Shown here piece after piece: positions 12,045-18,179 of a DNA stretch of 64,000 nucleotides. The number at the start of each line of letters is the position of its first letter. Within the stretch, counting starts at the first letter, position 1. Source of the DNA: Mizuhopecten yessoensis (taxonomy: Eukaryota); NCBI RefSeq assembly GCF_002113885.1, contig NW_018404481.1, positions 1,187,710 through 1,251,709 of the forward strand, given 5' to 3'. Under the pieces are notes generated by a model, which was not told where the DNA came from, did no database searches, and worked only from the letters and a program-made list of their open reading frames with translations. The translations under genes were made by a program, and so were the position numbers.

Positions 12045-12126
12045 ATGGGGGGGTTTCTATCCAAGATCTTCGGCAATAAAGAAATGAGGATATTGATGCT
12101 GGGCCTAGATGCAGCAGGAAAAACTA
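12045..12126 (+). CDS. ARF6: ADP-ribosylation factor 6, coding exon 1 ([27 protein letters not shown])
   Basis: Myristoylation Gly2, P-loop [11 protein letters not shown]6-type N-terminus; followed by U12 donor GTATCCTTT at 12127. Confidence 0.95.
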
Positions 12127-12135
12127 GTATCCTTT
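12127..12135 (+). other. U12-type (minor spliceosome) 5' splice site
   Basis: GTATCCTTT, the exact U12 GT-AG donor consensus. Confidence 0.92.
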
Positions 12136-12416
12136 ATGATATTACAAAGTTACCTGGTGATTTGGTGATGACTTTTTTTTCTTCTGACAAATCAAAGTTT
12201 TTAAATTCAATCTATTATTTCTTTGATCTTTTCTTTCTATGACAAGTTCCAGTCAATTATTTCAGTCCCATGTTGATATGAAGTGTAAATGCCAATGTTT
12301 ATTCTAAAGATATCAATTAAGAAATGTTTGATACACTGTATTTTGATAATTTTGTTTGCCACAAATTTAGTACTCGATTTATTTGTGTTTGTTTGTCTGG
12401 GTGTGATGTGTTGTCA

Positions 12417-12434
12417 TCCTTAACCGGTTTCCAG
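12417..12434 (+). other. U12 branch point and acceptor for exon 2a
   Basis: TCCTTAAC at 12417-12424 followed by CGGTTTCCAG; no extended polypyrimidine tract. Confidence 0.9.
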
Positions 12435-12538
12435 CTGTTTTATATAAAATCAAATTAGGTCAGAATGTTACAACTATACCAACAGTGGGCTTTAACGTGG
12501 AGACTGTGACGTATAAAAATGTCAAGTTCTCTGTATGG
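12435..12538 (+). CDS. ARF6: ARF6 coding exon 2a ([35 protein letters not shown])
   Basis: 104 nt, phase 1 to 0, encodes switch I and interswitch; U2 donor GTAGGT follows. Confidence 0.92.
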
Positions 12539-13829
12539 GTAGGTGCTTTTGGTTTGTCACAAAAAATTTGTACTAATATCACATGTTTACATGAAAATAA
12601 TACCCACAATACATTGATTATCAAGTGGTAATCTACTAAAAATGATGAAACATCACACTTCATGAATTTTGTTTCTTTATCATTTATCTATTAATTTTAA
12701 ACCACTAATGATACAGGTGAAGGCCTAGGAGAGCAAAGGATTACTCTGCATATATGTATACATGATACGCATGTTTGTATTTTTGAGTGCCTGCTGCACA
12801 AAAGTTTTGTCGCTTACTACTGTCTGGGAGTGAAAGGTGACAGAAATGGAGCGAGTGTGCAGATGGAAGCTTGCTCAAAGCGTTCTTATAATGTCTGCAA
12901 TATTTTCTAAATAATTTTACCATTATGTTTACGACAAAAGCTTTTCATCTTTGCCCTTGTACAGCATAAAAACTAAATCTGTTCACATACCTTGACTAAA
13001 TGATTAATTGGACAACAAAAAATGAATATGCAGATATCTTACTTGACCTCAAAGGAAATAGTCTGAAGCATTTGAATTGGAACAGTACTAAAAAGTGTCA
13101 AAGCAATATTTACATACTAGAAAAAAATGCTGAGTTACCAAAACGAGATTTTTTTCTATGTTGAGTCCCCATAAGTTCCCGAATTGAAAGATGTTATTAA
13201 GTATGGTTTGTATGTTGGGTTCAATAGACAAAACATCTTGAATCTTACAGTAACAGTGGCTGGGAAGAGAAATTATTATGTATGAGTTGACATCATTTAA
13301 TTCAGTTTGAATACATCGAAAACACTGGATAGGGCCTAGTACATCGAAGAGAAAATTAAAGCACATGTGTTGGATCACCACTCCTACCGATCACCCGTAA
13401 AATGGCCTGCACTCTCTATAACAGATTGAGAAACCGTCGTGCAGCAGATTACGATCACTATCAAAAACTTAATGGCATGCTATTTAATCTGTGGTTCAAG
13501 ATTGTGCACCAGGGCGAGAACTGCAGGTTAAACTTTTAGCAAACTATACAGTCTTATTCTCTTTTGTGCTATTTATAGAAAATTGATGGCCCTTCCCATA
13601 AAAAGTGTCCAATATGTAGTACAATGTTCAGTATTCCAGTGTTCACTGTTCAGTAGCTTCATAAAACTTAAGTATCTGCAGATTTGATTAGAACCTAGAA
13701 TGTTTGAACAGTAGAGTTCAGAAAAAATGACTTAAAACCTTTTTATTACCTATCTATTCTTAATGCCGTGCCCGCACTTGAATGTCTTTAGACATGTATC
13801 GAGTTATATCTGAGTGTAATGTATTGTCA

Positions 13830-15016: not shown

Positions 15017-15810
15017 TTTTTAGGTCACCTGAGCAAAGGGATTTCATTGATACCTAATGGGAATGTTACTGACAAATCCCTGACAAAGTGTTGTTATTTT
15101 TCGGATCGATCAGACATCCAATATGGCCACCAAGGCTGCCATTTTGAAAAACTATTTCAAACTTTAAAGTCAAGATCTAATGGGCTGATTTAACTGAAAC
15201 TTGGTAGGAATGATAAACTCATGGTCCTGACAAAGTGTTATTATTTTTCGGGTCGATCAGAAATCCAATATGGCCGCCATGGCAGCCATTTTGAAAAACT
15301 ATTGCAAAACTAAAAGTCAAGTTCAACTGGGCCTATTTAACTGAAACTTAGTAGGAATGATCGACTCATATTCCTGACAAAGTGTTGTTATTTTTTGGGT
15401 CGATCAGAAATCCAATATGGCCGCCAGGGCCGGCAATTTTGAAAAACTATTTCAAACTTAAAGTTAAGTTTTGCTGGGCCGATTTAACTGAAACAAGGTA
15501 AGAATGATCATCTTATGGTCCTGACCAAAGTGTTTTTTTCAGGTCCTTCAAAAATCCAATATGGCTGCCATTTTGGAAAAAAAATATTTAAAACTTACAA
15601 ATCAAGTTCTAATAGGCCGTATTAACTAAAACTCGGTCTAGGAATGGTCAACTCATTGTCCTGACAAACTTAACTTAAAGTTATACGTAACTTTTTTTTA
15701 CTCGAATTTTGTTAGGGACGATTGACATTATTATCTCCACTTCATATTTCAACAACAAAAACTAATACCATAGGACTCAGGTGACCGTTAAGGCCCATGG
15801 GCCTCTTGTT
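15017..15810 (+). mobile_element. Non-autonomous Helentron/HINE-like element with internal 147-bp tandem repeats
   Basis: Starts TTTTTAGGTCACCTGAG, ends CTCAGGTGACC..AGGCCCATGGGCCT (stem-loop) CTTGTT; CCTGAC(A)AAAGTG recurs at 15080, 15227, 15374, 15521. Confidence 0.8.
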
Positions 15811-16374
15811 GGTTGGTAGTATAGGTTTATCTAGGAAGAAGTGTGTGAAGGGAATACACTGTTAATATAAAAAAAAATGGTGGCTAATCTGTACAACTTG
15901 GCATTCATGAGTAAACTGAAGCTTAAATATTAGACCCGGGAGATAACAGATACATAAATGATTAATGCAAAGCCATGCAGCAGCTGAATACATTGAACAG
16001 CGAGGGACACTGCTTGTAATTCAGTCAGTGGTAATATAAAGTAAAGGACTAGCAAACCTGGGTTAATGTATTACCTACGTAATTGTGTGTCATTGTACTC
16101 GCTCGGATGGAACAGATTAAGTGTGGAATGATACATGAGCAACATTAGTTTAAATCCTTTGCAGATGTTAATAGCTCTAGCCGAGACTTAAAACAGGACA
16201 GAAATAATGTATACACAATAGGCAGAATTTCTGACCATTTCTTCCTACATGTACAAGTTTGATGCCTCATACATAGATGTCATGAAGTGCATGATGCACA
16301 CTTTTAAATTTTTCATCATACTGTATTTATAATTGAATTACATAATTTATAAATGTGATGGAGATGGATCCTGT

Positions 16375-16467
16375 TTATCTCATTCACCCCTGACATTTTA
16401 TAATAGTGAACCGTTCAAACCTATGAATTGGAAGAATCCAAATGTGTCATCAGGGGTGAATGAGTTA
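16375..16467. mobile_element. ~90-bp TTAA-flanked MITE (degenerate copy)
   Basis: CTCATTCACCCCTGA...TCAGGGGTGAATGAG TIRs. Confidence 0.75.
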
Positions 16468-17980
16468 TCAGAATATATGTAGGTGGTTATCTTCATTCAC
16501 TTGTAAAATTGATGTTTGGTATACATCCTTATGTATGAACATTGATACCGGCCTTTTATACTCAGTGCTTGAGTGTAGTGTAAATACGTATTATAAACAC
16601 ACAGACTGTGACATGAATCAAGGACCGGTATTTGTACACGTACATGATTCAGCCCTTCTTAAGTAGATGTACAAGTGTTATACAGTGTGTGCTTTGTAAA
16701 CTTCACAATTTCGTGTTGTAGTCCGTGTTATCCACATAGCACATTGTTTTTTTTGTACGATAAAAATAGTACTTAAAAAAATAGTCCAGTTACATTCATA
16801 TCTCCCGACTAAAACTTCTACAACCTTTGATCATCAGAAAAAATGTTGCTGTTATCATACATTTATAACAAACATCAGACCTTGTTGATTAAGTCTTCAT
16901 ACAATTAGGAACAAAGATAATTTAATTACCTTTCCGCTTTATGATAGCCCTGTAATCTAGCTAACTGTCACTTTCATAGCAGACATTTTGAGGAATAGAA
17001 TATTTTCATTTTGATTCAACTTATTATTCTATTGTGACATACTCTAGATGGATAGAAATCAATGCACAAATATTGTACATTTTTTTTTTTTTTTTTCCAG
17101 ACTTTTGGAATTGGGTATATAAGAAATGATGCATGAAATAATGATCTTATGATATGCAGAAAACATCACAACTGTCTTGATCAGCCATATGCATGATGTA
17201 CTAATGTGTTAGCCATGTATGTCATGTTTGCTTTCGCGATTCATTGACATGACTCAACCAACATCATTTCCTCACAAACTTTCTGCAAAGTGGGAAGTCA
17301 CTTATGAGAAAACCTCAAAGTATTTCAGGGTTTGAAGCTCAAGGTCAACATCTAGGTCACTTTTGATAAATAGGTCACTCGACCATTGCTGTTTTATCAA
17401 CAGCTTCATTGTCATCAGTCTGCCAACTAAAGGGGCAAGGGGCATGCATGCATGTCTTACAGATGTTTTCTAGTTTGGAATAGGAAAAAATAAAGTTGTA
17501 AAATAGTAGGTTATTTGTAAATTGGCAATATTTTTGCAGTGTTTTTTTTTTTCACAAATTTATAAATTCCTCAGTATTTTCGGAAATTTTAAATATATCT
17601 TCACATTACTGTTATTTAATTGCATATTTCTTAGAAGCTCTTTCAATAACGTGTATCTTATATATATATCAGTCTTTGCCAATTTATAGTGTCAAGCTAA
17701 TAGGTCCTGACCGGTAAGATTTCATTCACTCCCGTTAAGTATTTGTTTTGATCTTGTATAATTTGCCTGACTACATTGAAGGCCAAACTTCAAAGTGTGA
17801 CCATAATTAAATGAAAGTTTTCTAGTTCTCCACAATAAGATGTTTTCTGTTGGTTGGGGAATAATTTCAGTGCAATAGCCCTTGCATAGAAAACGAACCT
17901 GGAACAGTTATGAGAGTGGTATGACACTGGTTCAAATGTTCAGTTCCTCAAATAATACTTTCTTATTTTTCCTTTGACAG

Positions 17981-18179
17981 GATGTGGGAGGTCAAGACAA
18001 GATCCGACCGTTATGGCGTCATTACTATGCCGGTTCCCAGGGACTCATATTTGTAGTGGACTGTGCCGATCGCGACAGAGTGGACGAGGCTCGCCAGGAA
18101 CTGCACAAGATCATTAATGACCGGGAGATGAAGGAGGCTATAATATTAGTATTTGCTAATAAACAAGATTTACCTGATG
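17981..18179 (+). CDS. ARF6: ARF6 coding exon 3 ([16 protein letters not shown]...NKQDLPD)
   Basis: DxxGQ and NKQD motifs; U2 polypyrimidine acceptor TTCTTATTTTTCCTTTGACAG, donor GTTAGT. Confidence 0.96.

Follow-up and report, generated by a model that had tools for sequence, protein, structure and literature searches.

How can a gene that holds two near-copies of one coding exon yield messages with exactly one of them? The question arises in a stretch of 64,000 nucleotides (nt) from Mizuhopecten yessoensis (contig NW_018404481.1 of assembly GCF_002113885.1, positions 1,187,710 to 1,251,709 of the forward strand), here called the window and numbered from its first letter, in which the gene of the trafficking GTPase ARF6 has two versions of its second exon, 2a and 2b, downstream of a single U12-type donor. 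An earlier note, made from the letters alone, had proposed that the two are spliced in a mutually exclusive manner, by incompatibility between the minor (U12) and the major (U2) spliceosome. We read the window directly and mapped the raw reads of four RNA runs (X19, X22, X23 and X24, from four studies) to positions 12040-18039. As a result, the U12 donor was found demonstrably joined to both branch/acceptor sites. We consider it likely, though well short of certain, that a conserved U12 intron and a duplicated exon 2 together form a pair of exons made exclusive by U2/U12 incompatibility, 2a being the major and 2b the minor form.

One U12-type donor and two copies of exon 2

Every element listed in the earlier note was found in its place in the 64-kb window, and the gene is made up of the following features.

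12032-12126, plus strand: exon 1, preceded by ttttcag, with the ATG at 12045 and 82 nt of coding sequence (12045-12126)
12127-12135, plus strand: U12-type GT-AG donor GTATCCTTT, common to both alternative introns and the junction point of both observed joints
12414-12434, plus strand: U12 branch site TCCTTAAC and acceptor of exon 2a, with the joint 12126>12435 in four runs
12435-12538, plus strand: exon 2a, 104 nt, residues 28-62, near the ARF6 consensus (G36, Q37, N56)
12539-12544, plus strand: U2-type donor of exon 2a, GTAGGT, joined to 17981 in three runs
13827-13847, plus strand: U12 branch site and acceptor of exon 2b, the same as the 2a copy at 21 of 21 nt, with the joint 12126>13848 in run X24
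13848-13951, plus strand: exon 2b, 104 nt, in the same phase as 2a, from which it differs at L33, D36, T37, K56 and C60
13952-13957, plus strand: U2-type donor of exon 2b, GTAAGT, from sequence reading, with no joint from here reported in the RNA
17950-17980, plus strand: U2-type acceptor of exon 3, with a long pyrimidine tract, the AG at 17979-17980 and a joint from 12538
17981-18179, plus strand: exon 3, 199 nt, residues 63-128, from DVGGQ to NKQD
18525-18667, plus strand: coding part of the last exon, 143 nt, with the TGA stop at 18665-18667

The last base of exon 1, from which the RNA joints depart, is 12126, in phase 1 within codon T28. With either version of exon 2 the coding sequence sums to 82+104+199+143 = 528 nt, or 175 codons and a stop, in agreement with the 175 residues claimed before. 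We tested the identity of the gene exon by exon against Protein Data Bank (PDB) chains, comparing ARF6 with the best ARF1 chain. The bit scores were 132 against 108 for exon 3 and 82 against 50 for exon 4, and even exon 2b still had ARF6 chains as its best PDB match (49 against 43). The alignments follow the 175-residue ARF6 chain co-linearly, over residues 29-62 (exon 2b), 63-128 (exon 3) and 130-175 (exon 4), and human residue numbering can therefore be applied. By its sequence the gene is an ARF6 orthologue. No second ARF6 gene was found within the window, and the whole assembly (987.6 Mb) holds two copies of ARF6 exon 2, both on this contig. The codon-28 intron position is absent from the other ARF paralogues of the same genome.

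The donor GTATCCTTT matches the consensus /RTATCCTTT at nine of nine positions and occurs only once on the two strands of the window, so that the single U12 donor claimed at 12127 stands, on an RNA junction as well. As a U12 branch site we counted TCCTTRAC at about 10-15 nt from the 3' splice site without a long pyrimidine tract, and both copies are of this kind: TCCTTAAC lies at 12417 and at 13830, its branch A about 11-12 nt before the AG, with no long pyrimidine tract between. The sequence TCCTTAACCGGTTTCCAG precedes exons 2a and 2b alike, the identity reaching 21 nt, and TCATCCTTAACCGGTTTCCAG stands directly before each copy. Within the window, the branch/acceptor pattern is found at these two exon fronts and at one unrelated site. 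The paired 104-nt paralogous exons, their shared branch/acceptor, the U2 donors GTAGGT and GTAAGT and the acceptor at 17980 were thus all read directly, as previously described.

The same reading of the splice sites bears on the two joins that exclusivity would forbid. An intron between 2a and 2b would combine a U2 donor (GTAGGT) with a U12 branch/acceptor, and an intron from exon 1 to exon 3, with both copies skipped, would combine the U12 donor with a U2 acceptor; both would thus be hybrids of the sort on which the JNK-type mechanism turns. Both products would also be shifted in frame, as the earlier note had held: exon 2b, read in the frame that follows 2a, meets a stop at its sixth codon, and exon 3, read directly after exon 1, meets one after 44 codons, at a point 62 nt short of the final exon junction. 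Frame control would therefore push the same way as incompatibility of the spliceosomes.

We propose that the first coding intron of ARF6 is an old, conserved U12-type GT-AG intron, and that in this lineage its U12 branch site and acceptor, together with the 104-nt exon 2 and the U2 donor, would have been copied 1.4 kb downstream. The single donor of exon 1 would then pair, through the U11/U12 di-snRNP (small nuclear ribonucleoprotein), with one of two identical branch sites, and whichever exon 2 is selected would be spliced from its own U2 donor to the strong U2 acceptor in front of exon 3. Direct splicing of 2a to 2b, or of exon 1 to exon 3, would require a hybrid U2/U12 intron and would give a frame-shifted product with an early stop; productive mRNAs would therefore carry exactly one copy of exon 2.

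Exclusivity might instead be owed chiefly to the reading frame and to nonsense-mediated decay, the major spliceosome using the 2b acceptor and the double-inclusion transcripts being made and then destroyed. A length of 104 nt, which is not divisible by 3, and the stop that double inclusion brings at the sixth codon of 2b would suit such a route; PMC10853781 reports sites serving both spliceosomes, and frame incompatibility lies, according to passages of PMC5740500, behind most human mutually exclusive clusters. TCCTTAAC is also compatible with a loose U2 branch consensus. However, a branch A about 11-12 nt from the AG with a very short pyrimidine run is poor for U2AF/U2 and ideal for U12, the competing acceptor of exon 3 has a long pyrimidine tract, and the joint 12538>13848 was listed in none of the four runs. 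We thus regard this route as very improbable.

RNA joints from exon 1 and exon choice

The joints recovered from the four runs gave the following read counts.

12126>12435 (exon 1 to 2a): X19 3, X22 2, X23 5, X24 16
12538>17981 (2a to exon 3): X19 6, X22 1, X23 0, X24 22
12126>13848 (exon 1 to 2b): X19 0, X22 0, X23 0, X24 6

Exon 2a is the major form and exon 2b the minor form. The six reads joining exon 1 to 2b, all from X24, have three start points, and the shorter side of the joint is up to 68 nt long. Among the mismatches listed for X24 none falls over exon 2b, and the other runs are without a secondary 2b joint; the reads were therefore taken as genuine 2b and not as misplaced 2a. The joints 13951>17981, 12538>13848 and 12126>17981 did not reach the reporting threshold in the four RNA runs, whose depth here is low. 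At such depth the missing joint from 2b to exon 3 is not significant (P about 0.1-0.3), and the lack of 2b in X19, X22 and X23 is only marginal (P about 0.04-0.17).

The junction-read check that the earlier note had laid out thus came out in part: 12126>12435, 12538>17981 and 12126>13848 were seen and the forbidden pair was not listed, but neither was 13951>17981, and the reads are few. Likewise, the idea of two isoforms selected by branch-point choice stands as far as the donor is joined to both 2a and 2b, but not for the step from 2b to exon 3, whose joint was not listed, while exclusivity and regulation stay on the inferred side. We infer that a complete 2b mRNA would arise by splicing of 2b to exon 3, that 2a and 2b would be strictly exclusive, and that removal of the intron would depend on the minor (U11/U12) spliceosome.

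Two further observations concern the mapped region. At position 12071 X24, unlike the other runs, has C>T in 13 of 22 reads, a synonymous change in codon F9 of exon 1 and a polymorphism of the sample. The intron between 2b and exon 3 contains a 147-nt tandem repeat in 4.1 copies (15079-15668), and in each of the four runs RNA depth is high at 15640-15839 (up to about 350-fold), with many loose ends and internal joints, as expected of a dispersed repeat family transcribed elsewhere.

Age of the intron and origin of the second copy

The genome encodes small nuclear RNAs (snRNAs) of the minor spliceosome: in a search for three of them, U12 (109 bits), U11 (96 bits) and U6atac (94 bits) each scored above its Rfam cut-off, and the U12 snRNA copy has GUAAGGAA, complementary to the branch site. 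We then compared eleven orthologous loci from nine assemblies, reached via reading frames on public eukaryotic contigs, among which introns around exons 2 and 3 are widely common. At L022, L023, L026, L027, L029, L035 and L037, the phase-1 intron in codon 28 has the donor A/GTATCCTT and the branch site TCCTTAAC or TCCTTGAC about 10 nt before the AG; at L036 the U12 signals are slightly degenerate. The U2 intron between W62 and D63, at the position of the exon 3 acceptor, also recurs at orthologous ARF6 loci. A compact, fungus-like locus (L028:2460-3207) has a U2-type intron at the codon-28 position (GTGCGT ... TACTAAC), and the intron is absent in L024 (9587-10557, an animal-like genome) and in L025. 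Among 119 public exon-2 reading frames about 116 have the intron, and in 36 of these the branch site can be read as an in-frame xLN, xLD or SLT peptide. These comparative data give the strongest support for a U12 type of the intron. The U12 intron is shared by orthologues in seven other assemblies and is therefore old and conserved; the codon-28 position thus offers a series of U12 retention, U12-to-U2 change and intron loss.

The duplicated unit is short. A repeat finder aligned 12396-12554 with 13809-13967 (159 nt, 89% identity), and within the exons 94 of 104 nt are the same, with 29 of the 34 full codons specifying the same residue. The 10 differences fall in three synonymous and five replacement codons (I33L, G36D, Q37T, N56K and S60C). 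Upstream, the 39 nt of similarity hold three differences and the last 21 nt none, while the 16 nt downstream hold five; the adjacent intron bases thus differ at 8 of 34 positions while the 21-nt branch/acceptor block is unchanged. The chance of such a block is about 0.07 if drift acted in the 2b copy only, or 0.004 at the full flank rate, which speaks mildly in favour of selection acting at both acceptors. Compared with exon 2 of any other organism, either copy shows 22 or more nucleotide differences, against 10 between 2a and 2b; exon 2b therefore derives from 2a within the lineage, or has been homogenised with it.

The earlier note had proposed a search of related mollusc genomes for two exon copies; the seven other assemblies that contain a full ARF6 locus, none of them a close relative, have one exon 2 per gene. 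The 1.4-kb contig L027 ends 164 nt past its exon 2 and cannot rule out a second copy. The exon duplication thus looks lineage-specific. The nearest match to 2b among public reading frames is the 2a-like exon of L027.

Several candidate additions to this history were rejected. A relic third copy of the exon, suggested by T-S-I-L-Y across the end of exon 1 and the start of the intron (compare ARF6 TTILY), was dropped because orthologues share the donor consensus with unrelated sequence after it, and the upstream flank does not rise above shuffles. A transposon inserted between once-adjacent copies was ruled out, the interval 12560-13800 being unique in the genome. As for extended flank homology, there is none upstream, and about 50 nt downstream is borderline (z about 3, not above the best shuffle). 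A search for docking/selector RNA structures, which could have imposed exclusivity, found only weak AT-rich inverted repeats.

Are the two copies perhaps alleles or haplotypes misassembled in tandem, the reads from exon 1 to 2b coming from a carrier of the other allele? The use of 2b in one run only, and the polymorphism of that same run at 12071 in exon 1, would fit this. However, the flanks should then be duplicated too, and similarity stops 39 nt upstream and about 16-70 nt downstream. There is no second exon 1 ahead of 2b, the 1.24 kb separating the copies occur nowhere else in the assembly, and neither exon has another copy on any other contig. A divergence of 10% with four or five replacements would moreover be extreme for ARF6 alleles. 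A misassembly, which the earlier note had named as a possible refutation, is thus barely credible on the assembled sequence.

Several points weigh against U2/U12-enforced exclusivity between a major 2a and a minor 2b. The joint from 2b to exon 3 reached the reporting threshold in no run, and the joint from exon 1 to 2b represents about three molecules from one library. The absence of the forbidden joints is weak evidence, because depth is low (a few dozen junction reads in total) and such products would be degraded anyway. The fit of the U12 branch site to the loose U2 consensus means that some U2 use of the 2b acceptor may be conceivable. The exons differ by seven non-synonymous against three synonymous bases, as under relaxed constraint on one copy. 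The duplication was found in no other genome examined (seven with a full ARF6 locus, one with a partial contig), and with the 2b frame as query, public reading frames returned 483 matches, all of the canonical type.

Much of this would also be expected if 2b were a young, drifting duplicate that is occasionally picked, its isoform being noise without a role of its own and perhaps heading for loss. About three molecules, from one of the four runs, join exon 1 to 2b, and no joint from 2b to exon 3 was listed. Four of the amino-acid changes that can be polarised fall in 2b, in a protein otherwise almost invariant. The ratio of non-synonymous to synonymous changes is near neutral, a pattern that argues for relaxed constraint on 2b, and the duplication is absent in eight other organisms (the seven with full loci and the one with a partial contig). 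Nevertheless, 2b retains an intact frame and two intact splice sites, with a donor (GTAAGT) nearer the consensus than that of 2a. The 21-nt block has stayed unchanged beside flanks differing at 8 of 34 positions (at the probabilities given above). Each of D36, T37 and K56 is a natural residue of ARF6 orthologues or paralogues elsewhere, and an independent ARF6 paralogue has replacements at overlapping positions (hypergeometric P = 0.02). We thus consider a drifting duplicate unlikely, though by no means negligible, and prefer the pair of exclusive exons.

Protein consequences of exon 2b and relation to known systems

Compared with outgroups, 2a retains the consensus residues G36, Q37 and N56, whereas 2b has D36, T37 and K56; at residue 60, where the consensus is N, 2a has S and 2b has C. 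The replacements in 2b sit beside switch I (36 and 37) and in the interswitch (56 and 60). The classical effector-domain mutant of ARF6 is altered at Q37 and S38 and retains trafficking but not actin remodelling (PMC3207291), and the interswitch residues T53, K58 and N60 are part of the JIP4 specificity set (PMC10547916). D36, T37 and K56 are each natural in ARF6 orthologues or paralogues of other organisms, and D36 occurs together with K56 in a second ARF6 gene of L022 and L023 and in the fungus-like L028. These positions fit an altered-specificity isoform, though they do not prove one. We put the odds as about even between a functional 2b isoform and a young duplicate in light use. We offer only tentatively, and as clearly below an even chance, the fuller proposal that the duplicated exon would have been exclusive from its origin, giving two ARF6 GTPases that differ in effector-discriminating residues alone, with the choice of branch site setting effector coupling.

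Exclusive exons of this kind are best compared with those of JNK, which the earlier note had cited as the main known case of such an architecture, in agreement with passages of PMC8329584. According to these, exons 6a/6b (7a/7b) of the JNK genes MAPK8/9(/10) form an interlocked U2/U12 homologous pair with a hybrid intron between them, exactly one being included. ARF6 likewise has two homologous alternative exons separated by what would be a hybrid intron. The orientation differs: JNK has two U2 acceptors and two U12 donors that compete for one downstream U12 acceptor, whereas ARF6 is its mirror, with two U12 branch/acceptors competing for one upstream U12 donor and with U2 donors on the alternative exons. 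Moreover, the JNK exons are old, conserved among vertebrates and regulated by factors such as Nova, whereas the ARF6 pair is found in one genome only. Passages of the same source describe a competition of minor and major splice sites that leads to mutually exclusive inclusion of exons 11/11a in TMEM87A/TMEM87B, and passages of PMC5740500 assign U2/U12 incompatibility to 5 of 629 human clusters (0.79%). These cases share the principle of competition with ARF6, but concern other genes, in vertebrates. No member of the ARF family is named in the passages of PMC8329584 and PMC5740500, and a full-text literature search returned no paper tying ARF6 to U12 introns or mutually exclusive exons, which is no proof of novelty. 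The ARF6 pair is probably a new example of the rare class of exons made mutually exclusive by U2/U12 incompatibility, mirror-oriented to JNK.

Orthologues with a single exon 2 (L022, L023, L026, L027, L029, L035 and L037) share the intron positions and U12 signals of this gene, but have no alternative choice. Two of these loci hold a tandem second ARF6 gene about 2.5 kb past the first (L022:13990-16798 and L023:13905-16296), with the same U12 intron. Its exon 2 resembles 2b in having D36, K56 and a changed residue 60, but here the duplication took in the whole gene, and divergence extends to every exon (exon 3 is about 76% identical). Since 2b is 10 nt from 2a and 34 from this paralogue, the resemblance at D36 and K56 is convergent.

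U2/U12-enforced exclusivity is documented for very few genes, namely JNK, TMEM87A/B and a handful of human clusters, and ARF6, a core trafficking GTPase, would add a young example from an invertebrate. It would show that a conserved U12 intron can make a fresh exon copy exclusive immediately, with no need for RNA structures or regulators to evolve. With its two identical branch sites at a distance of 1.4 kb, the gene would serve as a simple system for branch-site choice by the U11/U12 di-snRNP, and 2a and 2b as a natural pair of ARF6 variants at residues tied to effector separation in mammalian work. If this is true, 2b and the second gene of L022 and L023 would offer a natural comparison of subfunctionalisation by splice form and by gene copy.

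Some minor observations concern related and neighbouring genes. On contig C1917 (G000), at about 76-92 kb, three ARF-like exons lie within 16 kb (L005, L006 and L008), each running from a GKTT start through DVGGQ; they are tandem ARL-type genes or another exon array, with intron positions unlike those of ARF6. In the window, two long open frames on the minus strand at 41698-43537 encode BTB, BACK and Kelch domains and point to a KLHL-type gene. At L022 and L023, a kinase-Kelch gene adjoins ARF6 on the opposite strand.

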